Assembly (NCBI GenBank): GCA_965202585.1
Contig: OZ241826.1
Span: 27,218,001 to 27,282,000, forward strand
Origin: Thalia democratica
Lineage: Eukaryota
Length of the DNA stretch: 64,000 bases
Direction of reading: 5' to 3'
Shown here: positions 11,604-57,818 of the stretch, in pieces
Layout: each line of letters starts with the position of its first letter
How positions within the stretch are numbered: position 1 is the stretch's first letter
Program-made: the position numbers and the translations under genes
The notes under the pieces: generated by a model
Seen by the model: only the letters and a program-made list of their open reading frames with translations
What the model was told of the DNA's origin: nothing
Database searches by the model: none

Positions 11604-13339
11604 CTATTGAACGCTAAAAACAATTAAATAAGCTGGAATCACGTCGATCGGCTGATACATGAAACTTTTTCTGGTTTGAAAACAGCACCCTCTGGTGTCG
11701 GAGTTGAGAAAAGCTACATTGTCCGCGCTTTTGCCATCCTTTACAACGAAGACAAACGACTGGTTTCCGACTCGTCCGTTCGTGACGCAGTAGCTACTTC
11801 CTTGCAAAAGTTCCCTGTTCAAACTAGTGGAAGCGTAAGAGGAGCACTGCCCGGCTCTGCCTTTGAACTGCTCGAAAAAATCATCAGTGCTCTCTGGATA
11901 GCCCTTTGACAGAATTTTTCGCAGCTCGTGGGACTTTTCTCCTCGCAGGTAGAGCATGCCTCTGCGTATGTTTTTAACATCGAATCCGTCAACAGGGTTG
12001 ATCCTGAAAATTTTCTGGATTGCCGCGTTCGGGCTCATTTTGGTCATCGACCGGAGCACAAACTGGTGGTCTGGATCTGAAGTTTGCAGCAGCTCCGCTT
12101 TGTACTTATCGCAATTTTTAGTTTCCGATAGGCTGCTTGTTTCAAACAACATTTGCTGCATAAAAGAGTTCACTTTGCGTTCAAACCGATGCTTCGCATG
12201 TTCAACTTCTGCCTGCTGATTGGCGCTTATTTCTTTTTCAAGCTCGGCAACAAAATTGTTCAAGGTGCAGTCTTTGGAAATAGCGAGACTATTTTTGATC
12301 AACACGTCTTTTGGCGGATCTGAAATCGGCGTGTCTTTTGTTAACTTGGTCTGGTTGAATTCGCCGTACAAAATGTGTTTTGCAAGCTCGCGAGCGCTTT
12401 GCTTTATTTCGATTTCTATCAAGTATTCGAGAGTTAATAGATCGTGGTGAGCTACAATTATTCTTTTTTCGTCATCATCTACTTGAAACGTGCCCGAAAG
12501 AATTTTGTTTCCGTCGCTGTCGAACTTGCGTGCAGGAGAGTCTTTAATCTCTACTTGTTTGTCGGAATGCAAACTTCCATCGAAAACCTTTAAAACGGGC
12601 TCGTAAGTAAAACTGGATTCAAGACACGGGTATGACGATTTTACAAACACAGTCGAAGTTGTCTTCTTACCGAATAAGTGTTCGCAAGTTTTAACAGACC
12701 GGTCATCTTTACACTTTTCAGAAAAACAACCTGAACATACCAGCGTTTCCTTCACTTTGCTAACAAACAAGTACGTCAGGTCTTTAAGGTTCCAATTGTC
12801 TTCCACGTAGTGTTGACCGTAACGACGAGCAATTTCATAGCTGTTCGTCATATAAATGCCAGGGCCCAGTCTGCCGGAAGACAAAGGCCTCAGTCCTTCT
12901 TTCAAGATTCCTTCGACGTTGCTCCCTTTGGTGCCGTGCAGAAGCAGCAAGCTCGGACATCTGCAGCGTTCCACATTTGACTTGACCCTGTAAATCCTGA
13001 GAGCGACGTTTTTGTTCAAGTCATTTTCCAATTGGTCCGTTTCACCGCTCAAACCGAGAGATCTTTTCAACAGATCGTAATCTGGATCGTCGCTTTCCAA
13101 TAGTTGAAGCTCGTGCTTGGAATCCTTGGAAAGAGATTTTTTAAAGCCGAAGATTGGCATTCAAACAAATCGACTGCTTCTTCCACCAATTCTTCTTTTT
13201 CCGCTTCGAATTGTTCGATTATGTGTTCGATTTCAGTTTTCGTCTCTTGTTTTTCTTCTTCGCACAGGCGACGCAAATAGTTCTGAGGACCAGCAAACTG
13301 TTTGATTGTCTGATCTAAATATTCTTCGTTGTAGTACAT
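11604..13339 (-). pseudogene. Tandem PARP-like ADP-ribosyltransferase gene, copy 1 (subfamily A), split by a 1-nt deletion in a poly-A run; ~578 aa if repaired
   Basis: ORFs 13067-13339 and 11604-13160 join if T6 at 13137-13142 were T7 as in copy 2. Motifs LLLHGT...GLRP...G.LGPGIYMTNS..A..Y and LEYLI; second degenerate domain ends IPAYLIVFS. Confidence 0.85.
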
Positions 13340-14380
13340 GATGTATTTAATATATAATCTGTAGTAAATGCTTATTTGTAAAAAAGGTATTTTTTTCGTT
13401 GTTATAAATAATTAAAGAAAAATGTTTATAAAAAATACAATATTATTTCTACTGTCATTGAAAGAATGAACATATAGTAGAAAAGTAAAGTTGCAAAAAC
13501 TAGCAAATATAAGAACCATGTACAATATAATAAATCTTATCTTTTAGAAACTATTTCCATATTAATAAAACATTCAAGCAAAAATAAAATTTAAAAAATC
13601 TATACTTCTAGAAAGTTTTAACTAGAGAATAAGAAAAAAACTGCTTAAACTTAAAGTTATAAAACATATTTATGAAAAAAAAACATTCTTAAACAAAAAA
13701 TTTAAAAAAAAATTAAAAATATAAATGTTTATTCTGTAATTACATGTTTACTGCAGCAAGCTGTGGCTTGAATTATCTCCTCTCCAGCAGATGAGTATTT
13801 ATATATGGCGTAAGCTTTCTCTTGAACGCTTGGACAAAAAAGAACTTTAACTCGAGTGTTTAAATTTAATGGAAAAGTTTAAGTTAAACTTCTTAAACAT
13901 CCAAGCGTTTAAGAGAAAGCTCGAAAGGTCACGTGTTAAGTTTGATAGGCTGTTACCCATATATAACTCAGTACCTCTATTACAAAATTTTTGCATAGGC
14001 ATACTAAAAAAAAAAGGTTAAAAATATTCTGAAGTTATTTTGAAATAACTATCATAGAAAATAATGAAAAGAACAACTGCAAAAACTAGAAAATATACAA
14101 AAAAACGTACTTCATAGCTTGTTTTAAAATGTATAAATTAATATTGAAAATTATTTACTTCGAAATTAAATTGGAAATTGCTTATAAGAAATAGCATTGT
14201 TTACATAAGAACTTTACATTAAACAACAAAAAACTAAAATGTCTATTTAAACAACGTGTTAGCAGCAGCAAGGTGAAAAAAAATCTCTTCGACAACTAAT
14301 TAGTATCTTTATATGGCTGCAGTATTCAAATTCAAACTTGCATAAATAAAATTTTTGACTATTACAGCTTTCTTTTAAAC
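11974..14380. repeat. Very recent tandem duplication unit (partner 15664-18070)
   Basis: Offset 3690/3691. I noticed only two differences (poly-T length at 13137-13142 and G/A at 13824 vs 17515); identity drops to ~90% after ~14380/18070. Confidence 0.9.
13775..13975. repeat. Small foldback of the repeat-family motif upstream of ART copy 1 (duplicate at ~17465-17665)
   Basis: AGCTTTCTCTTGAACGCTTGGA (13813-13834) pairs with TCCAAGCGTTTAAGAGAAAGCT (13900-13921); the stem is perfect in the second copy. Confidence 0.75.
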
Positions 14381-15663
14381 GTTAGGATTAATAGAGCTTA
14401 ACTTAAAATGTTTTATTAAATTTAAACAGCTATCAAATAAAGTTTGATATCATGTTACAAATTGATAACAACAATTTAATAAATAACTTTCAAGTTCAAC
14501 CTGTAACTTTCTAAAAAGGTTGCAATTTTTTACGGTAACCGTACCTCAGTCTATAATTTACAACCTTGTAGGTTAGCGATTTGTAACTTCATTTGTTGTT
14601 GAAACTAGGTAGAAAAAGTCTGTTTCTGAAGACCTTGTATGATAAATATAGTTTAAATTGCACTATAATTACTTTGCTATTATTTAATTTGTTATGAATT
14701 TGAGACTTTAGGAATTTATTATGAATTATTTTGTTATCTTTTTGAGACTTTGGAAACTTATTATAAATAATTTTGTTATCTATTTGAGACTTTGGGAACC
14801 ACTTCTCTGTTTAATAAAAAATTATACTATTAGTACTTTTTCCTAAGCTTACTAAGTTAAAAAAAAAGTTGTTTGTAAATTAAGTATTCGAATACATTTA
14901 TATACTCATTTTCAAACCTTAAATCTCTATTTTCAATTTTACTGTAGATTTTATTTGTAGTCATTTGTTGATTTTGATAGTTAAGACTAGCAGTTTATTT
15001 TTACGTCCAACTACCAAATTAAAGTGTTTCATTAAACCAAAAATAAAACCTTATAAATTTAATATAAACTACTTAAAGTAAGGGTATATTTACTTACTAA
15101 CTGAGTTTGGCATTTATAAACAAACTTTATCTAAATGAAACGGTTTAAATTTTTTACATGAAAAAAATGAAGGAACTGTTAAATAACAATTATGAAAATA
15201 AAAGTTGCCTTATTTAAAACAAAAAAAAAAGAAGTAGAATTTGTTTGTGTAAAGCCTATGTCAACTCCTGAGTCAGTTGTTTTTAAAGAAAAATATCTTA
15301 AGTACATGACCATTTAACATGATCTTGTAAAACATGTTTTTGTCTAAAATGAATTATTAAGTGCTTATATATAAAATTCTAGTATATAAGGAAAATTGTT
15401 GACTGAATTTTGTTAATACTTAAAAGATCAAGGCAATCCTTTTTAGTTAAGGGTCAGGATAGGCTTTACTTTTACTAAGATGGGAAGAACGGACTTACTT
15501 TGAAAAAAGATTGTCATAGCTTTTATGAAAAATATCTCAAGAAATGAAATAAGTATCTAATAATATAGAAAACCTTCATTTATCGTAATACAACACAGTT
15601 AAATATTTTAGATTTTCCAAAAAGTCTTCCAAAAAAATCAGCCTGGTCAACCAAAAACTAGCC
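14060..15663 (+). mobile_element. Repeat family R, copy 2 (probable hybrid copy); its right end abuts the ART coding sequence
   Basis: Homologous to 17750-19370 and to 3340-4960 (reverse). Ends ...GGTCAACCAAAAACTAGCC|TTAA at 15663. Confidence 0.7.
14690..14800. repeat. 42-bp minisatellite (~3 units; also ~18380-18490)
   Basis: TGAGAC starts at 14701, 14743 and 14785. Only one unit is evident in the R copy at ~4150-4190. Confidence 0.8.
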
Positions 15664-17030
15664 TTAACATCGAATCCGTCAACAGGGTTGATCCTGAAAA
15701 TTTTCTGGATTGCCGCGTTCGGGCTCATTTTGGTCATCGACCGGAGCACAAACTGGTGGTCTGGATCTGAAGTTTGCAGCAGCTCCGCTTTGTACTTATC
15801 GCAATTTTTAGTTTCCGATAGGCTGCTTGTTTCAAACAACATTTGCTGCATAAAAGAGTTCACTTTGCGTTCAAACCGATGCTTCGCATGTTCAACTTCT
15901 GCCTGCTGATTGGCGCTTATTTCTTTTTCAAGCTCGGCAACAAAATTGTTCAAGGTGCAGTCTTTGGAAATAGCGAGACTATTTTTGATCAACACGTCTT
16001 TTGGCGGATCTGAAATCGGCGTGTCTTTTGTTAACTTGGTCTGGTTGAATTCGCCGTACAAAATGTGTTTTGCAAGCTCGCGAGCGCTTTGCTTTATTTC
16101 GATTTCTATCAAGTATTCGAGAGTTAATAGATCGTGGTGAGCTACAATTATTCTTTTTTCGTCATCATCTACTTGAAACGTGCCCGAAAGAATTTTGTTT
16201 CCGTCGCTGTCGAACTTGCGTGCAGGAGAGTCTTTAATCTCTACTTGTTTGTCGGAATGCAAACTTCCATCGAAAACCTTTAAAACGGGCTCGTAAGTAA
16301 AACTGGATTCAAGACACGGGTATGACGATTTTACAAACACAGTCGAAGTTGTCTTCTTACCGAATAAGTGTTCGCAAGTTTTAACAGACCGGTCATCTTT
16401 ACACTTTTCAGAAAAACAACCTGAACATACCAGCGTTTCCTTCACTTTGCTAACAAACAAGTACGTCAGGTCTTTAAGGTTCCAATTGTCTTCCACGTAG
16501 TGTTGACCGTAACGACGAGCAATTTCATAGCTGTTCGTCATATAAATGCCAGGGCCCAGTCTGCCGGAAGACAAAGGCCTCAGTCCTTCTTTCAAGATTC
16601 CTTCGACGTTGCTCCCTTTGGTGCCGTGCAGAAGCAGCAAGCTCGGACATCTGCAGCGTTCCACATTTGACTTGACCCTGTAAATCCTGAGAGCGACGTT
16701 TTTGTTCAAGTCATTTTCCAATTGGTCCGTTTCACCGCTCAAACCGAGAGATCTTTTCAACAGATCGTAATCTGGATCGTCGCTTTCCAATAGTTGAAGC
16801 TCGTGCTTGGAATCCTTGGAAAGAGATTTTTTTAAAGCCGAAGATTGGCATTCAAACAAATCGACTGCTTCTTCCACCAATTCTTCTTTTTCCGCTTCGA
16901 ATTGTTCGATTATGTGTTCGATTTCAGTTTTCGTCTCTTGTTTTTCTTCTTCGCACAGGCGACGCAAATAGTTCTGAGGACCAGCAAACTGTTTGATTGT
17001 CTGATCTAAATATTCTTCGTTGTAGTACAT
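15576..17030 (-). CDS. Tandem-ART gene copy 2 (subfamily A): open 484-aa ORF lacking most of the second ART fold, with a 28-aa C-terminus derived from repeat R
   Basis: Identical to repaired copy 1 up to ...NPVDGFDVK (aa 456), then reads ASFWLTRLIFLEDFLENLKYLTVLYYDK from repeat R. Confidence 0.8.
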   Translation of the reverse strand: MYYNEEYLDQTIKQFAGPQNYLRRLCEEEKQETKTEIEHIIEQFEAEKEELVEEAVDLFECQSSALKKSLSKDSKHELQLLESDDPDYDLLKRSLGLSGETDQLENDLNKNVALRIYRVKSNVERCRCPSLLLLHGTKGSNVEGILKEGLRPLSSGRLGPGIYMTNSYEIARRYGQHYVEDNWNLKDLTYLFVSKVKETLVCSGCFSEKCKDDRSVKTCEHLFGKKTTSTVFVKSSYPCLESSFTYEPVLKVFDGSLHSDKQVEIKDSPARKFDSDGNKILSGTFQVDDDEKRIIVAHHDLLTLEYLIEIEIKQSARELAKHILYGEFNQTKLTKDTPISDPPKDVLIKNSLAISKDCTLNNFVAELEKEISANQQAEVEHAKHRFERKVNSFMQQMLFETSSLSETKNCDKYKAELLQTSDPDHQFVLRSMTKMSPNAAIQKIFRINPVDGFDVKASFWLTRLIFLEDFLENLKYLTVLYYDK

Positions 17031-17749
17031 GATGTATTTAATATATAATCTGTAGTAAATGCTTATTTGTAAAAAAGGTATTTTTTTCGTTGTTATAAAT
17101 AATTAAAGAAAAATGTTTATAAAAAATACAATATTATTTCTACTGTCATTGAAAGAATGAACATATAGTAGAAAAGTAAAGTTGCAAAAACTAGCAAATA
17201 TAAGAACCATGTACAATATAATAAATCTTATCTTTTAGAAACTATTTCCATATTAATAAAACATTCAAGCAAAAATAAAATTTAAAAAATCTATACTTCT
17301 AGAAAGTTTTAACTAGAGAATAAGAAAAAAACTGCTTAAACTTAAAGTTATAAAACATATTTATGAAAAAAAAACATTCTTAAACAAAAAATTTAAAAAA
17401 AAATTAAAAATATAAATGTTTATTCTGTAATTACATGTTTACTGCAGCAAGCTGTGGCTTGAATTATCTCCTCTCCAGCAGATGAGTATTTATATATGGC
17501 GTAAGCTTTCTCTTAAACGCTTGGACAAAAAAGAACTTTAACTCGAGTGTTTAAATTTAATGGAAAAGTTTAAGTTAAACTTCTTAAACATCCAAGCGTT
17601 TAAGAGAAAGCTCGAAAGGTCACGTGTTAAGTTTGATAGGCTGTTACCCATATATAACTCAGTACCTCTATTACAAAATTTTTGCATAGGCATACTAAAA
17701 AAAAAAGGTTAAAAATATTCTGAAGTTATTTTGAAATAACTATCATAGA

Positions 17750-19370
17750 AAATAATGAAAAGAACAACTGCAAAAACTAGAAAATATACAAAAAAACGTA
17801 CTTCATAGCTTGTTTTAAAATGTATAAATTAATATTGAAAATTATTTACTTCGAAATTAAATTGGAAATTGCTTATAAGAAATAGCATTGTTTACATAAG
17901 AACTTTACATTAAACAACAAAAAACTAAAATGTCTATTTAAACAACGTGTTAGCAGCAGCAAGGTGAAAAAAAATCTCTTCGACAACTAATTAGTATCTT
18001 TATATGGCTGCAGTATTCAAATTCAAACTTGCATAAATAAAATTTTTGACTATTACAGCTTTCTTTTAAACGCTAGGATTAACAGAGCTTTAACTTAAAT
18101 GTTTTATAAACTTAAACAGCTATCAAATGAAGTTTGATATCATGTTATAAATTAATAACAACAATTTAATAAATAACGTTCGATTTCAACCTGTAACTTT
18201 CTAAAAAGGTTGCAATTTTTTTTACAGTAATCGTACCTCAGTCTATAATTTACTACCTTGTAGGCTAGCGATTTGTAACTTCATTTGTTGTTAAACCTAG
18301 GTAGAAAAAGTCTGTTTCTGAAGACCTTGTATGATAAATATAGTTTGAATTGCACTATAATTACTTTGCTATTATTTAATTTATTATGAATTTGAGACTG
18401 TAGGAATTTATTATAAGTTAATTTGTTATCTATTTGAGACTTTGGGAACTTATTATTAATAATTTTGTTATCTATTTGAGACTTTGGGAACCACTTCTCT
18501 GTTTAATAGAAAATTATAATATTAATGATTTTATTTCCTAAGTTTACTAAGTATTAAAAAAAATAAGTTGTAAGTAAATTAAATATTCGAATACTTTTAT
18601 ATACTCATTTCTAAACCTTAAATCTCTATTTTCAAGTTTACTGTAGATTTTATTTATAGTCATTTGTTGATTTTGATAGTTAAGACTAGCAGTTTATATT
18701 TTCGTCCAATTACTAAATTAAATATGTTTTATAAAACCAAAAAAAAACCTTATAAATTTAATATAAACTACTTACAGTAAGGGTATATTTACTTACTAAC
18801 TGAGTTTGGCATTTATAATTAAAACTATATGTATCTAAATGAAACGGTTTAACTTTCAAACATTAAAAAAATGAAGGAACTGTTAAATAACCTTTATTAA
18901 GTAAAAGTTGCTTTAACTTAACAAAAAAAAAGATTAGTATTTGTTTGTGTAAAGCCTATGTTAACTCCTGAGTCAGTTATTTTTAAAGAAAAATATCTCA
19001 AGTACATGACCATTTAACATGATCCTCTAAAAGATGTTTTTGTCTAAAATGAATTATTAAGAGCTTATATGTAAAATTCTAGTATATAAGGAAAGTTGTT
19101 GACTGAATTTTGTGTGTACTTAAAAGATTAAGGCAATCCTTTTTAGTTAAGGATCAAGATAGGCTTTACTTATATTAAGGTGGGAAGAACGGACTTACTT
19201 TGAAAAATTATTGTCATAGCTTTTATGAAAAATATCTCAAGAAATGAAATAAGTATCTAATAATATAGAAAACCTTCATTTATCATAATACAACAGAGTT
19301 AAATATTGCAGATTTTCCAAAAAGTTTTCCTATAAGCAAAAAAGTCAGCTGGTCAACCCAAAACTAACCT
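17750..19370 (+). mobile_element. Repeat family R, copy 3
   Basis: ~90% similar to 14380-15663 beyond 18070; shares the terminus GGTCAACC(C/A)AAAACTA(A/G)CCT. Confidence 0.7.
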
Positions 19371-21589: not shown

Positions 21590-24500
21590 GGTTGTGGAAT
21601 CAACGTGCAATAGAAGGTTTTATTGAACGAAGTATCATAGGGAAAGAAATAGTTAAAAGAGTGTGAACAGAGTGTTAGTTCTATTGAGTCACCTAAATTT
21701 GGCGACAAGTTTTAATTCCTTAAAGTCAAATTAAAGCAAGAAAATTTAATTCCACTGAGCCAAAATAGAACTGAATTAATTTAAGACAATAAGTCACTAT
21801 ATAACCTTGCAAAAAAATTAAAATAGAACTCACAAAATTGAAGTCTAATCATTTACCACGAGTATTGACAATTTATAAGTTACAAGTAATCACAAAAACT
21901 AGTGACCAGCTTTAAGTCAAAGTAAGTGATATAAAATTCATGTAAGGTCTTAAATCTTAATAGAATAATTAAAACGACAATATTTACAAGTTAATAAGAC
22001 AGCAAAGACTAGTAACACCCTGAGATATTTAGGAGTTTCTTATAAGGGTATTGGCATGACATTTGAGTGTTTTGTTTTGTGATTTTTTTACTTATTCGTT
22101 TCAAATGCTGCAATATTTATAATAGGTTGTAACACATATTTGAAATTAAAATGAAAAATATAAGCGAAAAGATAAGTTTTTCTTGTCAAAACACAATAGA
22201 TATTTTTTTTATTATTATAAATATTTTTTTTTATTAAAGACCATTTGTAGAAAATTGTTTAATTATTTTATAGTTAAATATATTTAAAATTTTTTTTAGG
22301 AACATTAGTATAAGTTTTAAGACCAAGTTATATTTTGATATGTAATACCTTTTTTCTTTTAAATGAAGGAAGGGTAGTGTTTATTTTCCAACAAAATGGC
22401 AGAGGAGAAGTAGAGTGAAGATTCTCTTCCAAAAGTAGGAAAGGAAGTGGAACAGGGTATAAAACTATATTTGATCAATGTTTTAATTTAATAAAAGTTT
22501 TTAAGTTAAAGCTCTTGTTCATCCAAGCATTAAAGAGAAAGCTTAGAAGGTCAATTGTTTTACTGATGCAAGTTTGCATTTAAATACCATAGCCATATGT
22601 TAGTAATCATTTGTTGTAAAGAAGATCATTCAAGACACCCTTACTGCTACTAAAACTTTGTTTAAATAGAAATTTGTGTTTATAGTTATTCAAAGTAAGT
22701 TTTGTTTTAAACAGTTTGTTTTTTATATACAGTAAATAGTTTTTAATTTAATTTATACATTTTAAAGTATACCCCTTATAAATTAGATTTTAATTAAATT
22801 TTTCAATCCAGTTAAATTTATTTTTTAAAGCTGTTGATTTTTATTTCTTTGTTAGTGTTTGTATCTGTTTTTTGTATAAAATATATTCATTCATGACATG
22901 TCTAGTTTTATACACAGTAGCACTAAGTATTATTTAATATAGCTTTTAGTTTCATAAATGTTATTATCTACTTATTGTGGTTAATGGTTTGGGTCAGGGT
23001 TGCCATTTTACCAGGAAACCTAGTAAATCCTGGAATTAAGGCAAAAAAACCTGAAATTTGAGAAATTTTTAAAAAACGCAGAATTTTGAACAATAATCAC
23101 TGAGAAACTTAATATTTTAGCCATTTTAAGCTTACTGAGTAGTAAAATTTTGATTAGACCAAAAAATCTATGAAATAGATAGAAAAATTTCGTCATCATC
23201 ATGATTTTTTTATATTAAAATATACATCTAATGTTTAATTTTACATTACTATTTTATTATATTATTTTGCACAGTTTCTTACCCAAAAATTAATTTTAAA
23301 CTAAAAATATACCCAAAAATATGTACTTTTAGAAACTTGGAGGAAATTTAGGAAACCTGGAAAAAAAATTTGACAGGGTTGCTCAAAAGTTAAGAAATAA
23401 GGAAAATTTAGGTTTTCAAAAAAGTTAAGGAAATGTCAGGAAAATTGAAAAAAAAAACAAGTCACAATTTGTCAATTTAAGTTTACAAAGTTCCTTGTTT
23501 TACAAAACCTTGCAAAGGTAAAAAATTAATCAAAAATTCTTTAAAGTCAGAAAAACATTTCAAAATTTTTCTAGAGATTAACAAAATTATTTATTTTCCA
23601 TTGTCTTTATCTGGTGTGTAACATTAAAAAAAATAAATGTTATAAAAATATAAAAATTTTCTTTAATCATATGGAACAAGCAGATTTTGTAAGCTTTTTA
23701 ATATTGATGTTCTATAGCAAGGACACTTCCAATGTGAAACTGTGATATATACATAAAAGTTAATCTAGCATAATTATATAATTAAAGTGTTTTTTTTCTT
23801 TAAGTAAATAATTAAGCTATTTAAAATTAATCAGTTAGTTAAGTATTTTGTGTAACAAGTTGATGTGTATATCAACCCCTTTTATGATTTTTTTAAGTTG
23901 TTTTAATTTGTAAAACAAGTTTTAAGAGATGTATATGCCACGAATAAGTTTACTTATTTGTTTTTTTGTAAAATAACTTAAATTTTTAATATAATTAAGA
24001 GTAGATTTATATGTTACAAGTTTTAGGCTAAGTGATAAGAGAAAATATTTTATACAACAGATAAAAAGTTTTATTTTTTATGTATTTTCTTACTGTTACC
24101 TAAGTAGATATATAAAAAATGCTAAAAAACTGTGTCTTTTTTTAGACAAGCCGTGTTTATAAGGTAATAATACAAGTATATTGCTTATAGAGCAGTTTAT
24201 AGCAAAAAAATCAATCATACACAGATGGTTCAAGTAATGTGCTGGAAGTTTGTTAATTGAATTCAGCAAAAAAAACTGTTGTCTTAACCTGTATTATAAT
24301 ACGACTAAAAGCTTCATATAGTTTAAAGTGTTATATTATGGTTGATTTAACTTCTTCAAAAAGTTATATAATATTTATTCAAATATATATTGTTTATTAA
24401 ATAACATATAAACCGCTCAATATTTTTGTTCCTAGAATTTGGTGCACAAAAAACCTTTCGGTTATCTAATCGCACTCCACGGATACCTTTTTACGTCTTG

Positions 24501-27500
24501 TCCAGGACGAGACAAATATAAACTATTTTAAGTGTTTCAATCTAATTATCAAATCAAAAAGAAAGGTGAATTTTAGCAAAAAAATACTTATAACACTCAA
24601 CCTAAAAATCTTTAAGCTTATCATTATTTTTCATTTATAAAAAAGTTGTGACCACTTTTCTAATTATTTCCATGCTTGGTATAAATATTGTTGACTTCGT
24701 TTTATCAATCTATTTTAGGTTAATATTTAAATTGTAATATTCTAAATATTCTCTACTAATTTTTTTGAGGTTTAGGCTTAGACTGTATTTAAGTTTTTTG
24801 TTCTTTGATAAGTTTTAAAGTACAGTGTGAATAAAAATATTTCAAGTAAACCCATAACTAACTTCACTTTCTTTTTTTTCTTTTCATTATATTCATTTTT
24901 ACTAATCAAGGTTTCAAAGTTTAAGTTGAAAAAATTTAACATTTGTTGCTAAGAAAAAATTGTAAAAGCATGTGATGTACGACTTGATAACTGAAAGACT
25001 TTTTATCACATTAACTCCTTATTAGACCAAACCTTTGTTCAATAAAAAAATAGACAGAAAAAATATGCATGGAAAGCATTTTCTGAACATTAACTGCTTA
25101 CTTGGTTAAGAAATCTAAGATAAACCATTATACTTTGATTTAATTACGTTGACTACATTTAAATAATTTAATTATTTATTTTAATAAAAAAAATGATTAA
25201 TTTTTTAAATTTAGACTTTTTATACAGATTGTACAGTAAATACATCATGTACTCAGACGAAGAATGTTTAGATCAGACAATCTCGCAGTTTCCTGGTCCT
25301 CAGAACTACTTGCGTCGCCTATGTGAAGAAGAAAAGCAAATAACGAAAAGTGTTATCGATAAAATGGTGGAACGATTTGAAGCAAAAAAAGAATGTTTGG
25401 TGAAAGAAGCTGTGAAATTGTTTAAATGCGAAAATTCGGCTTTCAAAAAATCTCTTTCTAAGGATTCCAAACACGAGCTTCAACTATTGGAAAGCGACGA
25501 TCCGGATTACGATCTGTTGAAAAGATCGCTAGATTTGAGCGGTGAAACGAACCAATTGAAAAAGTACTCGAACAAAAACGTCGCTCTTAGGATTTACAGG
25601 GTCAAATCAAATGTGGAACGTTGCAGATGTACAGGCTTGCTGCTTCTGCACGGCACCAAAGGAAGCAACATCGAAGGAATTTTGAGAGAAGGACTGAGGC
25701 CTTCTTCGTCAGGAAAACATGGCCCCGGTATTTATTTGACGAACAGCTTTGAAATTGCTCATTGTTATGGAAATCGCTTTGTGGAAAAAGATGGTAGCGC
25801 CAAAGACTTGACATACTTGTTTGTAAGCAAAGTGAAAAAGACGCTGGCAAGTTCAGGTTGTCTTTGTAAAGATGACCAGTCTGTTGAAACTCACGAACAA
25901 TTGCTTAATAAGAATACAACTTCAACTTTGTTTATAAAATCTTCATACCCGTGTCTTGACTCCAGTCTTATTTACGAGCCCGTTTTAAAGGTTTTCGATG
26001 GAAATTCATATTTCGAAAAACAAATTGAATTTGAAGACTCTCCAGCCTGCAAGTTCGACAGCGACGGAAACAAAATTCTCTCGGGAACGTTTCAAGTGGG
26101 TAATGACGAAAAAAGAATATTTGTAGCTCACCACGATCTAGTAACTCTCGAATACCTGATAGAGATCGAAATAAAGCAAAGCGCACGCGACCTTGCGAAA
26201 TACATTTTGTATGACTCTTCAATCTTAGATCCACCAAAAGACGCGTTGATTGAAGACAGTCCTGTTAACTCTGAAGACTGCTCCATGACCGCTTTTGTTG
26301 CCGAGTTCAAAAAAGAAATAAGCGCCAAGCTGCAGGCAGAAGTTGAACACGTGAAGCATCAGTTTGAACGAAAAGTGAACTCATTCATGCGGCAACTGTT
26401 GTTTGAAACGAGCAGCATCTCGGAAACTAACGATTACGCCAAGTACAAAGCGGAGCTGCTGCAAACTTCAGATCCAGATCATCAGTTTGTGCTCGGTAAT
26501 ATGACCAAACACAGCCGAAACGCGGCAATCTTGCGTATTTTCAGGATCAACCCAGTCGACGGAAGCAAAAAGACACGAGGAGGCTTGCTTTACCTGCGAG
26601 GAGTCAAGTCCTACCAGGTGCCGAAAGTTCTGGCAAAAGGCTACCCTGCGAGCCATGAAGATTTGTTGGGTCAGTGCGAGTGCGGAGTCAGTTACTGTTT
26701 CTGCCACGCGTCCACCATCTTGAACTGTGAACTAGGAGATGGATTAAGCCACTGCGTCACGAACGGAAAAGTTGAAAAGCTGTCGTTCGTCTTCGTGGCG
26801 AGCGACGGCAAAGTAGCGGACAATGAAGCTTTTCGCAACTCCGACACCAGAGGGTGCTGTTTTAAAACTGGACTGGTATTTAAGCATCAGCTGATCGGCA
26901 TGACTCCGGCTTATTTAGTTGTTTTTAGCGTTCAGTAGACTATAAATAAATTGTATTCCTTTGGTTGAAACAGTTGTCTGTATATACACTCAAAAATGAC
27001 AATTGTTTTAATTTTTCAAAAAGTGCTAAACACTTTTATACAGTTTTCTAAACAAATAGTCATTTAAAATGGTAACTAGCATGATATTTAATTAAAATCA
27101 CAATTTTGTTTCAAAAAGATGACAATTTATTTTACTTCGCAACAAACAAATTTTCGATAGTTTTTACAGGTTTATCATTACACCATCCAAACTAATTTAC
27201 TTATTTTACTTCTTACTAAATTTTGAGTGAAATAATTTCACTACTGTCTTTCTATAGTTGAGGCGATCAACAAAAACATCGGCCTCTAAAACATTGGTCG
27301 ACAGAGTCTCAGTCTGGATATTCGTATGACGTGAGACAGGCACAAGTTTTTCAAAAATAAATTTTTTATCTGACAAGTTGGCCAAGTCTCATTAGTCTTA
27401 TAAAATAACATCCGTGATGAGTTTTAACTTTGTCTGAAGGTTATAAAATTATCGAAAGAGCAACACACCTTTTTTAATTTAACTTTGCTAGTAAAATCTT

Positions 27501-27740
27501 GTATACAAACGTTCGTTGTCTTTAAATTGTTAATTCGTAAACGACTAGGATTTTTAAAAATAGATCAGGCTAATCTTTGATCAAGATTATATAGGTTATT
27601 TAAAGAGTTTAATAGTTTTGTTGTATATTTTTGTAGTTAAAAACACACATCAGTTTAAACCTTTCCCTTTTCAACAATAAACGTTTTCAGGGTCATTCCG
27701 AGCGAAATTGCGCTGAAAGTAATTTTGTCAGCTTCGAATA
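21590..27740. repeat. Segmental duplication block A (with ART copy 3), inverted partner of block B
   Basis: Continuous reverse-complement colinearity with ~55330-62155 across gene and both flanks, roughly 85-92% by eye. Confidence 0.9.
25247..26938 (+). CDS. Tandem PARP-like ADP-ribosyltransferase gene, copy 3 (subfamily B), intact, 563 aa
   Basis: Uninterrupted ORF. ATG 25247 is homologous to the starts of copies 1/2. Motifs LLLHGTKGSNIEGILREGLRP..SGKHGPGIYLTNS, YLFVSKV, LEYLI; second domain LYLRGVKS..VLAKGYP...MTPAYLVVFS. Confidence 0.9.
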   Translation: MYSDEECLDQTISQFPGPQNYLRRLCEEEKQITKSVIDKMVERFEAKKECLVKEAVKLFKCENSAFKKSLSKDSKHELQLLESDDPDYDLLKRSLDLSGETNQLKKYSNKNVALRIYRVKSNVERCRCTGLLLLHGTKGSNIEGILREGLRPSSSGKHGPGIYLTNSFEIAHCYGNRFVEKDGSAKDLTYLFVSKVKKTLASSGCLCKDDQSVETHEQLLNKNTTSTLFIKSSYPCLDSSLIYEPVLKVFDGNSYFEKQIEFEDSPACKFDSDGNKILSGTFQVGNDEKRIFVAHHDLVTLEYLIEIEIKQSARDLAKYILYDSSILDPPKDALIEDSPVNSEDCSMTAFVAEFKKEISAKLQAEVEHVKHQFERKVNSFMRQLLFETSSISETNDYAKYKAELLQTSDPDHQFVLGNMTKHSRNAAILRIFRINPVDGSKKTRGGLLYLRGVKSYQVPKVLAKGYPASHEDLLGQCECGVSYCFCHASTILNCELGDGLSHCVTNGKVEKLSFVFVASDGKVADNEAFRNSDTRGCCFKTGLVFKHQLIGMTPAYLVVFSVQ

Positions 27741-29978
27741 TTTTATTATATTGTTTGTTTTATTTTGAATTTTTTGGTAAGTCATAACCATGATGCAGGG
27801 TTAACAATGACATGTTGAAAACAATAGAAAAACAAACTGCGATCTAAAAAAATTTTTTAGTAGGTTGTATTACTTTGACCTCTACAATATGTTATAGTTT
27901 AAAGTACAAAAATTTTATCTGAGTTTTTATTTTATTTTATTCTAAACTCTGTATAAAGATACTTGGGTAGTTTGACATTTACTTCATCTTACTTTAAGTT
28001 AAACTAAAGTACTTGTTTGTTCTCATGACTGTAGTAAATATTATTAAAACAGTGCTACTTTTTTTACTAGTTGTTACTTATATTGCATGTTATTTTTTTT
28101 GTATTATTAAGATTTAGGTAATTGTTTTTAATCAAAACACATAACTATGTAAAGTTTCATTTATCCACGGTAATAATTCATCTAACTTTGATCGTGTGCA
28201 AAACTAAACTAAGTTTTGGTTTTATTAGGAAACTTTATTTTAAAATACTATTACCAAGTTAAGTGACGGTGGTATCTAACAAAAACATATACATATTAAT
28301 AGTTTATTGAACAAACGAACAAAAACGAAAAATTGCTCAAATATTTGTGGTTTCAAGACATGGGTACACAAAAAGTTCTCTCGGTAATCAAGTAGCATAC
28401 CAAACAAAAAATTATAGTGAGCACGAAAATTTAAAACATTAAATATTTTTCTAAACAAAAAACTTTTAAAAAATTAAAAAAAAATGTAATACTGTCTTAT
28501 ATTAAACACTTATAAACGATATTTTGTATTCTACGTTAGAAAGTATAGTTTTAACCACAAATGTTTTAATTTTGATATTTATCATTTATACTTTTTTAAG
28601 AAAACAAATAAAAGATTTCAACTACTGGAGGAGAAATAATGAATTTGTTCTTTCGATAGATTATTTTACAGGCTCTATTTTAGGCTTTGTCAGTGCTTAA
28701 ATGAATCTAAAAAGATATATAACAGTCATGGAAAATAGCATAAAAACAATTAAATTGAAACAGAAACAAATTTTTACTTAATATACTAAACAAATAATTT
28801 TTTAATAGTAAGTTTGAATTTAAGGTAAAATTTAATTTTATTCGTTCCTAAAATTTATTAAGCTCAATTACTAGAAAAAGTTTTCTTAAACAAGCTCTAA
28901 TCTGATTTGGTTAAAAAAATCAAAGTTTTTATTTTATTAAATCAGCAAACTTAGTTTTGTTTTCTAAACCAGGAATACCATTTATATAAACTTCATTAGT
29001 TGCTAATGAAAAAAAAATTTTAGAGCTCTCTATTTTAAATCTAAAGTCAAATCGAAAATTAGATAAAAACTTGAAAAGAATTCTTATTTTTTAATGCAGA
29101 GACGTTAGAAATGAACTTTAATAATAGTTTAAATTTTGTGAAAAGTACTTAAAAAAACTTTAAATAATGTGTAATAAAAATATTTGCAATATTAGTAAAA
29201 CATAAAGTATTGTTTTAATAATAGTTCTCTAATACTTGAACAATAATACTTCATTAATAAATTTTTATGCAGATTTTAGTCAATAATATAGGTATAATTC
29301 TCAGTTGCTAGGCCTTATCAACCACAATTAAAATCAAAAATATAGCTAGAGATATTACTTCAATATTATGCTTGATTACACAAACCCAAGTACATTCATT
29401 TTATTTAGGAAAACTGCATATTTGATCTTTAAAGTTTGAAATACAAATAAGCGCAGCAGATTCATTACAGACAAACATATGAAAATTATTTTTTAAATTG
29501 TTTATTTGTATAAAAATTTGAAAAAAATTGACTCTAAACCTATTTTATCCTGTTTTTTTTTTTGGTTTTTAATTAAACTTTAAGAAATGTTTGAATATAT
29601 ACAAGGCCATACAGAAAGGGGGTTATAATCTTTTTATAACAATACTAACCATTAGTTATTTATTTAGACTTGGTAAGCTTAAAATAGTTTAATAAAAGAA
29701 AGTGAGATAAATTTTGTTTTAAAATTTGAGGAATAATGATTTAAACAAATTTTCATTGAAAACTTAATTAAGATTTTTTTTTAAGTTACTAAAACTTATT
29801 TTTTGTTTGATTTCTAAGACAATTAACTTCAAACTTTGGGAATGTCCCATTCGGTGTATACAACTATTAGTTTGAGTTACCATGAATTATGCAAAATGAT
29901 ATGAGCACACAGTGTATTTTTTTTCACTGGATAAAATAATGTATAAGGCTCTAACATATACAATTTTTTATAAAAATA

Positions 29979-34130: not shown

Positions 34131-34140
34131 GAGGGAGAGT
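34100..34140 (+). promoter_or_regulatory. -1 programmed ribosomal frameshift signal at the gag/pol junction
   Basis: A AAA AAC (34100-34106) is in gag phase and the -1 frame is the protease ORF. A 7-bp stem ACTCTCC (34117-34123)/GGAGAGT (34134-34140) follows. Confidence 0.75.
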
Positions 34141-37849: not shown

Positions 37850-39610
37850 ATGAAGATATTAACGATGTTATTCGTATCGGTAGCGCTTGGCTACCTTACG
37901 ACAAACGCACAAAATCCTGTGCAGAGGAAATATAAATTGCCGCTTTGCACGAGGAAAGTTGCAAAGCGGTATCTGCTAAGCGAACCAGCTCCGTGTTCTT
38001 CAAAATCTAGAAGCGTGAATACCATCAAAGTCAACATCACTCCGCCTATAGACAACCATGTCAATCAAAAAGCCTTCATCTGTCGTAAACAGGAAGTTAT
38101 CTAAGAATGCACGGAAGGTTTCTTTCGTGCAAGTAGATGATATTTTTAAAGCCGTCCAAACAGAAGAGTGCCAGCTGATCGAAATCACCCATCAGTCAGA
38201 AGTAGGGACGTTGACACCCTCAGACGAGAATACATTGAAGACGAACAACGTTCTAAAACCGAAATTCAATTGGTTGGCGACAAACACGATCATAGTGCCC
38301 TACATGATCTTGTCTTATACGTCGGTAGTGGCTGATCTAAGTGATGGGTCCGTCTCTCATGCGTTGCTAGAAAATCTGAGTTGCATCGAGCTGGACCAAA
38401 TTCTTTCGTGCAAAGAAGAAGGCTGGAGACTTATCACCTCTAGAGTAAAACAAGAAAGGTGCAAGCAACCACGGGTGATTACTGACGCATTGCTAGAAGT
38501 TTTTACTCTCGAGAGTGGAGAACTGTATAGCGTCCAAGACGCGAATATCGTCTTCACCAAACTCCTTAAATGTGATGATGCTACCCTAAAGTGTTTGCCA
38601 ACAGGCGCCGAAACTACCCGATGCACCGCGACGGGTTACGCAGTGACGCTGCCCAAAACATTTTCGTCTGCCACAACAGCCGCAGAAAGCGTGAAGATGC
38701 CTGCAAAACTTAAGATTTTAGAGTCTGCCATCGCTAGCTCCTCGTATTCCTCCAAGCTAGAACTGGAACTTCTCAATTCTCAGCTGAACGAGATGCTATG
38801 CAAAAACAGCAGAGCAACACTAGTATCGTTGCTCGCTGCCCAGCGGTCCACTCCCTCTGCGGTTTTGAGCCTGCTAATTGGGCGAAAAACACAAGCGGTC
38901 TATCGACACAACGCGTTGTATGAACTTCAATGCCAAGACACACACGCAGTACTTCAACCGTCTTTTGAGTACAATAGAAAAGTAGCGCGTTACCCGCTTT
39001 TCAACAGCTACCTCGGGTCATCCACGGTGGTGGCCCAGCTTACTGATGAGGGATATCTAACGCAGAACGTGCAGTACTCACTCCATCCAGCAACCAAACA
39101 GGCTTTCATCCTCCAAGGTAAATTCATCGTTTTTGTCAATAACACTCTTACCGAAGAACGTCCGGCGCTGGAGAAGATCGTCATAAATGGGGACTCACCA
39201 TTGCAGCTTCTAATTTCACATTTTCGGAAGAACTGACTTTGTTTGATTTGGCCGAAGTGGCAAGACCTGAGGAAGCCATAAGCAATCAAGCGTTGATAAA
39301 CCTAATTGCACTGAATAAAAAGGACTTTGGTAACCGCGGTATAGATGTCGCACAGTACCTCAAAACAGGGCACTTACTCGATGAGAAGTCACTAGAAGAA
39401 ACCCTTCAAGCCAAATGGTCGCTTTGGGAGGTCGTGAGAGGCATCCTCCATGTCACAAACACTTCATGGACAGCCATTACGATGATCGGGATTTCCATCA
39501 TTGTGCTGAGGCTTTACCTGACGAGAAGGAAGAGGAGGAGGAACGAAGAAGGAGAGGTCGAGCCTCCAGTGGAAGAGAAGGGACGAGCATCAAACGGTAT
39601 GAAACGATGA
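37850..39610 (+). pseudogene. env: env-like type I membrane glycoprotein, class III fusion protein-like, disrupted (stop 38102-38104, frameshifts at ~38125 and ~39225)
   Basis: Signal peptide MKILTMLFVSVALGYLTTNAQ, Cys-rich ectodomain, gB-like segment LCKN...TPSAVLSLLIGRKTQA...LQC, and TM WTAITMIGISIIVLRLYL followed by RRKRRR. Confidence 0.75.
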
Positions 39611-40214
39611 CTCATTAACTAGCTTCGGCTATTAACTTATAACTAGGGATTTGTAAATAAGATTTTATAAAACTTTTCTTAAAATTGTTTACCACACTTA
39701 AAACTGTTATTTAGCATTGTTTTACTACTACAACTTAATGAGTTTTATGCTGGCTATAAAAGCGTTTATTTAAGTTTGTTAACTAAATTTCGAATTTTTT
39801 CTGATCTGCAAAACGTTACAACATTTAAATACACTCTTACATTTAAGTTTTTGGTTGGACTATAAGATGATTACTGAGTGCTAAAATCAGATTTTTGATG
39901 TAATACATAAATATCTTTATATCCTAGTACCTTCTAGCACATTAAGTTGATGTTTTAATGATTTTTTTTTGAATATCTCTTAAAGATTTACTTTGGGGTA
40001 TTAAAGATAATCCATAAAAAGAAATTAAAAAACACCCCATACCTATTGTGCATGCTTTATATTTTTAAGTTGTTAGTATTCTAGGCGTTTAATGGGTTTT
40101 TACAAGGATTTTGAAGTCTTTTTCAGCTTAACCACCTTTAACATCTTAAAGTTAATGTTTTTAAAAAACGGAAACCAAGTTGGAACATCAAATTGGTTTC
40201 CGAAGGACCAGAAA

Positions 40215-40947
40215 TGTAACGATATTGCGTTTAAATAAAAAAGGGCGCTAAAGAGTTTTCTCAAATTAGGGACTTTTTTATCGCTTTGTTCACTTCTCGA
40301 ACTGCTTTAGCATGACGTTCAGTCAGTTGCAGCAGCCTTTCTTTCAACAACGTTTGTAATCGTGAGTATTGTTTATTCTTTTGCATGTTATTTCTGTTTC
40401 TCTAATATAAGCTGTACATTTGAATTTGTTTAGTGTGAAATATTGTATTTGTTTACATAATTTTGAATAAAATAGGTTGTTTTAAAGATTGCTAACATTT
40501 TATTAAATTCAGTTGTACACTTAGTTTCACATAAGATTTAATAACTTAAGTATATTTTTTTAGACTAAATAAAGATCGCTAGCAGCTTCATTATCTCTTA
40601 ACATACTTAACGTAATCATAAACTAACGTAACTTACTAAACTTGTTGTGGCCATAGTTAGACACGTTCCTCTGGCTAGTTAATAAAATACAATAGATATA
40701 TTAGCAACTCCCTCAGAAATAGCACTATGAGTACAGGTAATCGCAGTAAGCCTAAAGTTAGTGATAATGACGGCATGTTCTCCAAAGAGAACATGCAAGC
40801 CGCTTTTAGCGAGACCACAGAAATCAAGGCTCGTAAGAGCAAGAGGTTAGAAAAAGCGGGCGTACCCAAACGTACTATTGACCCGAATTACTCTTCATCG
40901 CACAAACAGGGTACTACAGGCCAAGTAGCCCCACAGCGAGAAAGATA
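40215..40947 (+). repeat. 3' LTR (733 bp, TG...TA; terminal CA mutated)
   Basis: About 92% identical to the 5' LTR by eye; contains the 73-codon copy of the gag start (40727-40948). Confidence 0.8.
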
Positions 40948-54700: not shown

Positions 54701-55200
54701 TAAAACATAAAACTTAATTTAACTGTTTTACATAACTGTACCAATTTTCACAAATTTGAACTAAAATAGTTGTAAGTAAGAATGGTAATTAATTTTAAGT
54801 ACATTGTTTATTAAGTAAACTTTAATAAGGTTTTATTATTTATTTAATTGAATTTAATCTGTAAAACAATTTGATTAGATAAAATCAAGTAAGTTAATTT
54901 TTTTCGCTTATCTACATTTAATGTGTTTTATAAAGTAGTTTTTCTTTATAAAATTATTTAAAAAAAAAAATTCTTTATTATCAAAATCAAAAGTTTAATT
55001 GGAAGCACAGCTTGAATCAAATTTAAATAAAAGTTTGACAAATACTTGAAACTTTATGACTAATTTTGTCTTTACATGAAGTTACTTGTCAACTACTAAA
55101 TACTTAAAATATATAATAGATAAATAAACTCTATAAAAAGACCTATCTTGAGTAGTAAAAATAATAAAATAACCTTTTAAACTGATACATTCATAAAAGT
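51800..55200. repeat. Old tandem duplication upstream of the metalloprotease (~51800-52900 vs ~53600-55200)
   Basis: Shared blocks AATCATAACAAAAA...TATTTCAAATTA, CAGTACATCA, TATTAGCATT(A/G)CAAAAACTT and AAGGTTTTATTATT...TTGATTAGATAAA. Confidence 0.6.
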
Positions 55201-56121
55201 ATTTTAAACGTAGTTTTCGGTGACTTAAGTTTTAACTTAATAACGACCAACTCATTGTACAGCAAATTATTTCGAATGGACTTGTCCAACTTAAAACACA
55301 ACTTACAAGATAAAAAAACATTCGAAGCTGACAAAATTAGTTTACTTTCAGCGCAATTTCACTGTGAATGACCCTGAAAACGTTTATTGTTGAAAAGGAA
55401 AAGGCTTAAACTGCTGTGTTTTTAACTATAAAACGATATGACAAAATTTTTAAATTCTGTGAATAAGCTATATAATGTTGATCAAAGATTAACCTGATAC
55501 ATTTTTTAAAAGACGAGTCGTACACAAATTAACGATTTAAAACAACGCACATTTATATACAATATTTTACTAACAAAGTTAAATTTAAAAAGGCGTGTTG
55601 CTCTTTCGATAATAATACAACCTCTAAACAATGTTAAAACTCATCACGGGTGTTATTTGATAAGACTAATGAGACTAGGCCAACTTGTCAGGTAGAAGAG
55701 AAATATTAAAAACTTGTGCCTGTCTCACGTCATTTGAATGTCCAGACTGAGGCTCTGTCGACCAATATTTTGGAGGCCGATGTATTTGTTAATCGCCATA
55801 ACTATAGAAAGACAGTAGTGAAATTATTTTCACTCAAAACCTAGTAAGTACTAAAACAACTAATTTAATTCGGATGGTGTAAGGATAAACCTGTAAAAGC
55901 GATCGAAAACTTGTTTGTTGCGAAGTAAGATCAATTTTCATCTTTACGAAACGAAATTTTGATTTTAATTAAATATCATGCTCGTTACCATTCTGAATAT
56001 TTATTTGTTTAGAAAACTGTATAAAAGTGTTTAGGACTTTTTGAAAAATTAAAACAATTGTCATTTTTGAATGTTTATACAGACACTTGTTTCTACTAAA
56101 GGAATACAATTTATTTAAAGT

Positions 56122-57818
56122 CTATTGAATGCTAAAAACAACTAAATAAGCCGGAGTCATGCCGATCAGCTCATGCTTGGCTACCAGTCCGGTTTTAAAA
56201 CAGCACCCTCTGGTGTCGGAGTTGGGAAAAACTTCATCGTCCGCGCAGTTGCCGTCGCTCGATACGAAGACAAACGAAAGATTTTCGACTCGTCCGTTCG
56301 TGACGCAGTGGCTTAATCCATTTCCTATTTCACAGTTCAAGAGGGTGGACGCGTGGCAGGAACAGTAACTGACTCCGCACTTGCACTGACCCAACAAATC
56401 CTCAGGGCTCGCAGAGTAGCCTCTCGCCAGAACTTTCGGTACCTCGTGGGACTTGACTCCTCGCAGGTAAAGCAAGCCTCCTCGCGTCTTTTTGCTTCCG
56501 TCGACTAGGTTGATCCTGAAAATATGCAAGATTGCCGCGTTTCGGCTGTTTTTGGTCATATACCCGTGCACAAACTTGTGATCTGGATCTGAAGTTTGCA
56601 GCAGCTCCGCTTTGTACTTGGCGCAACTATTGGTTTCAGAGATGCTGCTCGTTTCAAACAACAGTTGCCGCATGAATGACTTCACTTTTCGTTCAAACTG
56701 ATGCTTCTTAAGTTTAACTTTTACCCCTTGATTGGCGCTTATTTCTTTTTTAAGCTCGGCAACAAAAGCGGTTATGGAGCAGTCTTCAAAGTTAACAGGA
56801 CTGTCTTCAATCAACGCGTCTTTTGGATCTGAGATTGAAGAGTCATACAAAATGTATTTCGCAAGCTCGCGTGCGCTTTGCTTTATTTCGATTTCTATTA
56901 AGTATTCGAGAGTTAATAAATCATGGTGAGCCGCAAATGTTCTTTTTTCGTCACTTAAAACTTGAAACGTTCCCGAGAGAATTTTGTTTCCCTCGCTGTC
57001 GAACTTGCAGGCTGGAAAGTCTTCAAAATCAATTTGTTTTTCGGAATATGAATTTATCACGAAAACCTTTAAAACGGGCTCGTAAATAAGACTGGAGTCA
57101 AGAAACAGGTATGAAGATTTTATAAACAAAGTTGAAGTTGTATTCTTATTGAGCAATTGTTCGTGAGTTTTAACAGACTGGTCATCTTTACACGCTTTAC
57201 AAAGACAACCTGAACTTTCCAGCGTCTTTTTCACTTTGCTTACAAACAAGTATGTCAAGTCTTTGGCGCTACCATCTTTTTCCACAAAGCGATTTCCATA
57301 ACAATGAGCAATTTCAAAGCTGTTCGTCAAATAAATACCGGGGCCATGTTTTCCTGACGAAGAAGGCCTCAGTCCTTCTCTCAAAATTCCTTCGATGTTG
57401 CTTCCTTTGGTGCCGTGCAGAAGCAGCAAGCCTGTACATCTGCAACGTTCCACATTTGATTTGACCCTGTAAATCCTAAGAGCGACGTTTTTGTTCGAGT
57501 ACTTTTTCAATTGGTTCGTTTCACCGCTCAAATCTAGCGATCTTTTCAACAGATCGTAATCCGGATCGTCGCTTTTCAATAGTTGAAGCTCGTGTTTGGA
57601 ATCCTTAGAAAGAGATTTTTGAAAGCTGAATTTTCACATTTAAACAATTTCACAGCTTCTTTCACCAAACATTCTTTTTTTGCTTCAAATCGTTCCACCA
57701 TTTTTTCGATTTCACTTTTCGTCTTTTGCTTTTCTTTTTCACATAGGCGACGCAAGTATTTCTGAGGACCAGGAAACTGCGAAATTGTCTGATCTAAATA
57801 TTGTTCGTTTGAATATAT
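56122..57818 (-). pseudogene. Tandem-ART gene copy 4 (subfamily B): start ATG changed to ATA (57818-57816) and 1-nt deletion in the poly-A run (T5 at 57616-57620)
   Basis: Aligns end to end with copy 3. The 485 downstream codons remain open, with only in-frame indels. Confidence 0.85.

Follow-up and report, generated by a model that had tools for sequence, protein, structure and literature searches.

The window analysed here, a stretch of 64,000 nucleotides from Thalia democratica (contig OZ241826.1, positions 27,218,001 to 27,282,000, renumbered from 1), carries four paralogous genes, c1 to c4, related to the PARP family and encoding two ADP-ribosyltransferase (ART) folds in a single chain. 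The second ART fold is an ancient degenerate copy of the first. A first-pass annotation, made from the letters of the DNA, had proposed such an internal duplication and interpreted it as a lineage-specific mono-ART with an inactive second domain acting as regulator, decoy or target sensor; the observation itself is confirmed and the interpretation partly supported. A tblastn search with c3, the sole intact copy, as query recovered exactly four paralogues in the window, without further fragments. The open reading frame (ORF) of c3 lies on the forward strand (25247..26938) and encodes 563 residues from the family-consensus start, being collinear with 39 full-length homologues that begin MY(S/L). 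An additional upstream ATG at 25193 extends it to 581 residues, and all residue numbers below are counted from this codon.

Several comparisons support the duplication. The halves of c3 match each other in BLASTP (E 1e-06) and, as 17-sequence alignments compared with hhalign, over 120 columns (probability 99.1%, E 1.2e-18). Domain 2 is also matched in full by a 100-sequence profile built from domain 1 and its single-domain relatives (see below): the alignment spans 181 columns (E 1.2e-14) and extends from K-Y-K-x-E-L-L at the beginning to I-P-A-Y-L-I-V-F at the close. In profile searches of the PDB both domains find the catalytic domain of PARP3 (E 1.3e-07 for domain 1, 0.0025 for domain 2); domain 1 also matches PARP1 and PARP4, and its PARP3 match improves to 1.7e-12 when the sister family is added. 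The AlphaFold2 (AF2) model of full-length c3, built from a 17-sequence alignment, has a mean predicted local distance difference test score (pLDDT) of 76.5, with an insert in domain 1 (residues 219-260) as the sole large disordered piece, and its Foldseek matches are the PARP1/2/3 catalytic domains (E about 1e-08). Modelled alone, domain 2 reaches a pLDDT of 87.3 and a predicted template modelling score (pTM) of 0.86, and its best 50 PDB matches are all PARP ART domains (PARP4, 14, 13/ZAP, 1, 3, 2, 12; best E 2e-06, TMq 0.54-0.65). The C-terminal half thus models as an ART fold, as the first-pass annotation had anticipated.

AF2 secondary structure places a long helix of about 40 residues before each ART domain, at 25301..25417 (residues 37-75) and 26285-26401 (residues 365-403), both on the forward strand. 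Homology between these two helices was rejected (hhalign probability 0.8%). The motif pairs quoted in the first-pass annotation are all present, but the pair taken there for a duplicated helical segment, ELQLLESDDPDYDLL / KAELLQTSDPDHQFV, is in fact strand 1 and helix 1 of the ART core; this pair (ELQLL..DPDYDLL) aligns to PARP3 residues 147-170. At E<=1, Pfam returned PF00644 and noise and nothing else. The earlier statement that no WGR, WWE, macro, ankyrin or BRCT domain is recognisable therefore stands at this threshold, as does the lack of the other diagnostic accessory domains of named PARP subfamilies, including HD, SAM, CCCH and vWA.

Domain 1 of c3 (25454..26197, forward strand, residues 88-335) is assigned to the PARP-type ART fold by Pfam, PDB profile, Foldseek and column statistics. 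PF00644 matches it in the four copies with E values of 2e-05 to 7e-08; c1 (32.7 bits) and c2 (27.4) lie above the gathering cut-off of 26.7, and c3 (24.5) and c4 (22.7) below. A Pfam search on each half, as proposed earlier, was therefore productive for domain 1 but not for domain 2, which the PARP model failed to detect in 17 members. Matches to PARP models and structures together with the His and Tyr place domain 1 in the PARP/diphtheria-toxin-like (H-Y-E clade) superfamily. Across 40 full-length members H153 (25649-25651), within L-L-H-G-T, is kept in 37, and the G-x-G and Y181 (25733-25735) of G-P-G-x-Y in all 40; a second Tyr (192) is found in 35.

In the PDB, no PARP was retrieved with a profile limited to the last 52 residues of domain 1, and so the column of the catalytic Glu was located through the single-domain sister family, which aligns with domain 1 end to end. 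Among 94 single-domain relatives the column of I309 (26117-26119) holds E 56 times, H 13, Y 12 and I/V 8 times; D/N stands before it in 82 of the sequences and F/Y after it in 93, with V/I/L next. This is the canonical N-E-[YF]-[IV] catalytic motif. The same column in the two-domain proteins holds I (23/40), V (5/40) or T (5/40), and the triad of domain 1 is, by this alignment, H-Y-I. The first-pass annotation had rightly stated that domain 1 keeps H and Y and has no Glu, as the column statistics of the 40 members bear out, but its placement of an R at the E position (DEKR) is off by one, since R308 precedes I309 and occupies the N/D position of the motif. Domain 1 therefore does not complete the H-Y-E triad of PARP1/2 and the tankyrases; with no Glu in either register, poly-ADP-ribose synthesis is not expected. 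H-Y-I is a signature of human mono-ART PARPs.

Domain 2 of c3 (26435..26935, forward strand, residues 415-581) was delimited by hhalign, AF2 and Foldseek. All three triad residues are gone from it in the window copies, where the corresponding positions hold R, none and V. The first of these, R469 (26597-26599 in c3), is present in all four copies, as had been noted, but the substitution does not extend to the whole family: the His column of the 40 members has H in 14, N in 8, R in 4, K in 3 and others, and R at this column is thus subclade-specific. G-x-G-x-Y has disappeared from domain 2 in 40/40 members, and V562 stands at the Glu column. The place of the domain-1 G-P-G-x-Y is taken in c3 by a Cys cluster, C-x-C-x4-C-x-C-H (26675-26707, residues 495-505), a possible metal site at which AF2 confidence is low. 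The Cys-rich loop occurs in about half of the family; it is present in c3 and c4 and mostly lost in c1. A D-[ST]-R-G motif shared with domain 1 (D289..G292) and the sister family is retained in domain 2 (D551-T-R-G in c3; D551 in 38/40), and G470, L480, G483, P572, Y574 and L575 are, like D551, invariant or near-invariant. All 40 full-length members, whose proteins as a whole are 21-70% identical to c3, have an alignable domain 2, and its dN/dS of 0.53 (see below) is below 1; the domain is retained, not decaying. With a predicted fold that is kept and an NAD-site triad that is lost, it qualifies as a putative pseudo-ART.

Homologues were sought by a word-index search and an exhaustive hidden Markov model search, which gave 858 matches at E<0.001 and 101 at <1e-30, with about 35 full-length two-domain representatives. 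All members looked up come from ENA, JGI or Logan marine assemblies, mostly Tara Oceans, and lie as uninterrupted ORFs in contigs with flanks of 21-27% G+C. No named homologue was found among 5.8 billion clusters, the sole named match being an Astyanax 'GCRV-induced gene 2e' (Gig2e) protein with four PARP stretches, whose similarity is restricted to 65 columns around the H-Y motif (hhalign 93%). Given this restricted similarity and the lack of other named relatives, none of the described PARP classes is orthologous to the family, in agreement with the first-pass annotation. Its sister group consists of single-domain 'mini-PARPs' of 217-270 residues (P0124-P0160 and P0201-P0305, at loci L008-L011), which form more than 100 clusters, are encoded by uninterrupted ORFs in AT-rich marine contigs and all keep H and Y. 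One mini-PARP relative, P0241 (539 residues), is fused to RWD and IBR domains. A viral origin of the family found no specific support, giant-virus PARP matches being weaker (E about 3e-05) than cellular ones. These searches expose a sizeable radiation in marine plankton genomes that standard annotation largely misses: Pfam does not detect domain 2, and it scores domain 1 of the intact copy below its threshold. The sister family also spans H-Y-E, H-Y-H, H-Y-Y and H-Y-I, and so makes it possible to follow in graded steps how Glu-containing ARTs give way to Glu-less ones.

An unrooted maximum-likelihood tree of 17 domain-1, 17 domain-2 and 47 single-domain sequences resolves three clean groups, with domain 2 and the single-domain proteins each supported by an SH-like approximate likelihood ratio test (SH-aLRT) value of 99 and domain 1 lying between both. 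The domain-1 and domain-2 subtrees show largely the same groupings, with longer branches in domain 2. This pattern indicates that the two-domain architecture arose once, before the diversification of the family. Mean column identity is 46% for domain 1 and 35% for domain 2, which has been the faster-evolving of the two since the duplication.

Neither an accessory domain nor orthology ties the family to a named PARP subfamily (1-3, 4, tankyrase, 7/11/12/13, 9/14/15, 10, 16 or 6/8). The closest functional parallel is with human PARP7, 10, 11, 12, 14, 15 and 16 (H-Y-(I/L/Y)), which have the same ART fold and NAD-site motifs and a hydrophobic residue in place of the Glu; a profile that includes the sister family matches PARP15 (7.6e-12) and PARP14. 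In contrast to the human mono-ART PARPs, the proteins described here have no WWE, macro, zinc-finger or other accessory domain and do have a degenerate second ART. Moreover, the similarity is limited to the first ~130 residues of the domain, and PARP3 is the best single PDB match; the proteins thus cannot be clearly assigned to one of the named subfamilies. The binary toxins VIP2, iota Ia and C2I contain two ART folds derived from a duplication, one active and the other an inactive adaptor. They thus resemble the present family in joining an ART and a degenerate ART in one chain and in reusing the dead copy, there for protein-protein interaction, but they belong to the R-S-E clade, are bacterial and secreted, and have the inactive copy at the N-terminus. 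Domain 2 showed no relation to them in sequence or among its top 50 Foldseek structural matches.

Searching the literature for tandem or double catalytic domains in PARPs gave no relevant result, and no PARP was found described there whose second ART is conserved yet degenerate; Gig2, ZAP, TASOR and the binary toxins are partial precedents. The first-pass annotation had not recognised the architecture among characterised PARPs; this holds in that no class is orthologous, but tandem PARP-like units do have a precedent in fish Gig2 proteins, which carry 2 or 4 of them (PMC3617106). Gig2 genes are interferon-induced and antiviral, like mono-ART PARPs, and have been described as specific to non-amniote vertebrates (PMC3617106). 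They share with the present family a small size, PARP signatures without accessory domains, lineage-specific tandem clusters and, in some, internally duplicated units. In contrast, Gig2 units are of ~150 residues with their own C-terminal domain, and their repeats, of recent origin, still closely resemble one another, unlike a pair made up of a conserved active copy and a degenerate one. The c3 family does not show this organisation of a PARP-signature N-terminal part and a Gig2 C-terminal domain, its hhalign match to the Gig2e-annotated protein covering just the 65 columns of the H-Y region. ZAP/PARP13 (PMC8568172) and TASOR (PMC7532188) have lone pseudo-PARP domains, that is, ART folds in which triad residues have been lost but which persist in non-catalytic functions; that of PARP13 ranks with the best structural matches of domain 2 (2x5y, E 2.6e-05). 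Those proteins contain no ART besides the dead one, which is joined to domains of other kinds, whereas here the degenerate domain stands in cis with an apparently competent copy.

From these comparisons we put forward that the intact gene may encode a soluble two-module protein, in which a mono-ART (domain 1) is coupled to a non-catalytic partner (domain 2). Both modules would begin with a long helix and continue into a PARP-type ART fold, and no accessory domain is detectable in the protein. Domain 1 would bind NAD+ and transfer single ADP-ribose units, as the H-Y-I/L/Y human PARPs do, and is probably an active mono-ART. Domain 2, given its motif losses, is very likely non-catalytic; it would be unable to bind NAD+ and might serve domain 1 through intramolecular packing, regulation or substrate recognition, by analogy with the inactive ART copy of VIP2/iota-type toxins and the dead PARP domains of ZAP and TASOR. 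Taken as a whole, the proposal is in our judgment evenly poised between right and wrong, and a number of results weigh against it. An ungapped HMMER alignment to PARP15 puts K/R (R308), not the Ile, at the Glu position, opposite the PARP15 Leu, albeit in an alignment that is very weak and insignificant (score -0.4), and the AF2 strand boundaries (308-312) are compatible with either register. In the ungapped HMMER alignment to PARP3 a near-invariant Ala (A189) occupies the place of the nicotinamide-anchoring Ser, a substitution that might make NAD+ binding weaker. Only one of the four local copies is free of defects, and whole-gene dN/dS (the ratio of non-synonymous to synonymous substitution rates) gives no sign of positive selection.

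PARP-family mono-ARTs are central to antiviral and stress biology, and their regulation is poorly understood. A competent ART permanently paired in cis with a conserved dead copy would be a natural system for asking what a pseudo-ART does, be it regulation, substrate selection or a decoy function.

The remaining copies fall with c3 into two subfamilies by DNA alignment and identity counts, A (c1 and c2) and B (c3 and c4), with a coding sequence (CDS) identity of 74-84% between them. The earlier description of four copies in two subfamilies, intact, truncated or frameshifted, proved accurate, and tblastn and DNA alignment locate the defects; calling the family 'expanding' is generous, as only one of the four is intact. 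In c1 (11604..13390, reverse strand; DNA alignment, tblastn in two frames and translation) both domains are open from 13160 down to 11604. From the start ATG near 13337, about 66 codons are read out of frame owing to the loss of one A from an A-run near 13140. The ORF of c2 (15576..17030, reverse strand; ORF list, alignment, identity and tblastn), a partial tandem duplicate of c1, runs intact from the start through the N-terminal helix, domain 1 and the linker to about residue 40 of domain 2, and ends in an unrelated 27-residue tail. The 5' flanks of c1 and c2 are 100% identical, as are 99.93% of 1,369 aligned columns covering the first ~1.37 kb of the CDS, and homology stops at about 15675. 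In c4 (56122..57869, reverse strand; DNA alignment, tblastn and translation) ATA stands where the family start ATG is expected, and one A is missing near 57620; the other 485 codons are open. Its CDS is 94% identical to that of c3, and the flanks 90-91%. The frameshifts of c1 and c4 are both a loss of one A in the same N-terminal coding A-run, in two different subfamilies, pointing either to a hotspot of slippage or to an assembly error in the homopolymer. In c1 to c4 and in loci L003-L007, some 20-25 nt 5' of the ATG, there is a pyrimidine-rich stretch with ACAG at its end; it is conserved even beside an otherwise unalignable 5' flank and might act as the acceptor site in splicing or trans-splicing of a short 5' leader.

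The syntenic context of these copies consists of segmental duplications. A tandem duplication of ~3.7 kb (11974-15664 and 15664-19370; 96.6% identity over 3.7 kb, 100% across the gene part) gave rise to c2, and c2 is truncated at the 3' end and diverges completely because the breakpoint falls inside domain 2. Self-blastn further identifies a segment of ~6 kb around c3 (21724..27766) with an inverted duplicate at 55293-62171 that contains c4 (89-90% identity). The duplicated units have no bounding terminal repeats in self-blastn and are plain segmental duplications; carriage of the PARP genes by a mobile element has no support. Against a background divergence of 7.6% between c3 and c4, a tract of 357 bp (25491..25847 on the forward strand in c3; about 57320-56965 in c4) is identical in both, where the expected number of such runs is about 1e-10. 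It encodes residues 100-219, and windows over residues 119-218 contain zero synonymous and zero non-synonymous differences. The tract records gene conversion between two paralogues in inverted orientation, 30 kb from each other, and coincides exactly with the NAD-site core of domain 1, even though c4 has the look of a pseudogene. The left edge of the window (1-2634) holds a third copy, at 77% identity, of a 2.7-kb far-upstream flank common to c3 (21704-24333) and c4 (59517-62186), and a fifth gene copy may lie next to it, beyond the edge.

By the Nei-Gojobori method, dN/dS between c3 and c1 is 0.41 overall (0.34 in domain 1, 0.53 in domain 2; dS 0.40), and between c3 and c4 0.60. Pairwise values of 0.4-0.6 amount to relaxed purifying selection. 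In sliding windows between the subfamilies, the corresponding ratio of proportions (pN/pS) is ~1 only at residues 219-278, the disordered insert, and 539-578, in the C-terminal part of domain 2. The first-pass annotation's analogy with the birth-and-death pattern of immune effector clusters thus finds no direct support, the values being those of relaxed purifying and not of positive selection. Nevertheless, the combination of segmental duplication, gene conversion, pseudogenes and a large lineage-restricted radiation offers weak, circumstantial grounds for seeing in the cluster a fast-turnover gene family that might be related to conflict. In an alternative scenario, which we consider possible if somewhat doubtful, the genes form a lineage-specific cluster of ordinary paralogues, unconnected with immunity or conflict and turned over by neutral segmental duplication in a repeat-rich and gene-poor region. 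The lack of a gene-wide non-synonymous excess at dN/dS of 0.41-0.60 agrees with this, as does the mosaic of segmental duplications and retroelement remains that makes up the region. The points on the other side are circumstantial: the size of the radiation (>100 single-domain and about 35 two-domain clusters), the local gene conversion, the two stretches with pN/pS near 1 and the analogy with interferon-induced antiviral mono-ART PARPs and Gig2 (PMC3617106). A stronger version of the conflict reading, in which domain 2 is an integrated decoy or sensor that holds the domain-1 mono-ART inactive and releases it when engaged by a pathogen factor, appears quite improbable. If true, it would provide a marine-eukaryote counterpart of kinase-pseudokinase and integrated-decoy immune receptors, built from PARP folds and radiating from a large arsenal of single-domain 'mini-PARPs'.

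The count of defective copies depends in turn on the assembly. Since both frameshifts are a single missing A at one homopolymer, they could be sequencing errors; the near-complete (about 100%) identity of c1 and c2 across the gene also resembles a collapsed or expanded repeat. More than one copy might then be intact, and possibly the c1/c2 duplication itself would be an artefact. We regard this as rather unlikely: c4 has an independent ATG-to-ATA change, and identity between the c1/c2 repeat units drops to 90-95% at a distance from the gene, a pattern in favour of a genuine duplication.

In contrast to the proposed pairing of a mono-ART with a non-catalytic partner, both domains might be catalytically dead, the protein being a double pseudo-enzyme that acts as a scaffold or binds ADP-ribose or an NAD-related ligand, in the manner of ZAP and TASOR. 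The missing catalytic Glu, the Ala at position 189 and the score of the intact copy under the Pfam gathering threshold would all fit such a protein. However, domain 1 has kept its H, G-x-G-x-Y and second Tyr in 35-40 of the 40 members while domain 2 lost them, a selective retention that an active NAD site would predict, and H-Y-I PARPs are active mono-ARTs. A protein dead in both domains is thus unlikely. A fusion of an H-Y-E domain with an R-S-E-type (C2/C3/VIP2-like) domain 2, instead of a copy of domain 1, is effectively refuted: the weak Pfam ADPrib_exo_Tox (PF03496) match of c1 domain 2 (E 0.021, 14.6 bits against a cut-off of 23.4; best E 0.0056-0.021), with its R in LYLRG and an S-T-S triplet, is confined to one of 17 members and lies below the cut-off, whereas domain 2 aligns over its whole length to domain 1 and the PARP-like sister family, has PARP3 as its PDB profile match, includes no R-S-E toxin in its Foldseek top 50, and has H in the R column in 14/40.

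The window as a whole has ~23% G+C, with a few islands at 37-57% G+C, which contain the four PARP-like ORFs and one degraded retroelement and nothing else. Neither tRNA nor Rfam matches were found in it, and exact look-ups of its proteins gave no hit. This gene-poor, repeat-rich layout, together with an element resembling those with long terminal repeats, points to a eukaryotic nuclear genome. The retroelement-like unit spans ~8.2 kb (window 32038-40945) between direct repeats of 93% identity (32038-32768 and 40214-40945). A gag-like ORF occupies 32550-33428; a second ORF, at 34037-35896, has a CCHC-like motif and weakly matches aspartyl protease; and an env-like ORF with a transmembrane segment and a basic tail is split by a stop (38058-39236 and 39239-39610). 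No reverse transcriptase or integrase was found between 32038 and 40945. Intact homologues of the env-like ORF, of ~611 residues and 89-94% identity, have no Pfam or PDB match and occur in Logan run ERR13064799 and in ENA assemblies, the 94%-identical relative being from ERR13064799 only.

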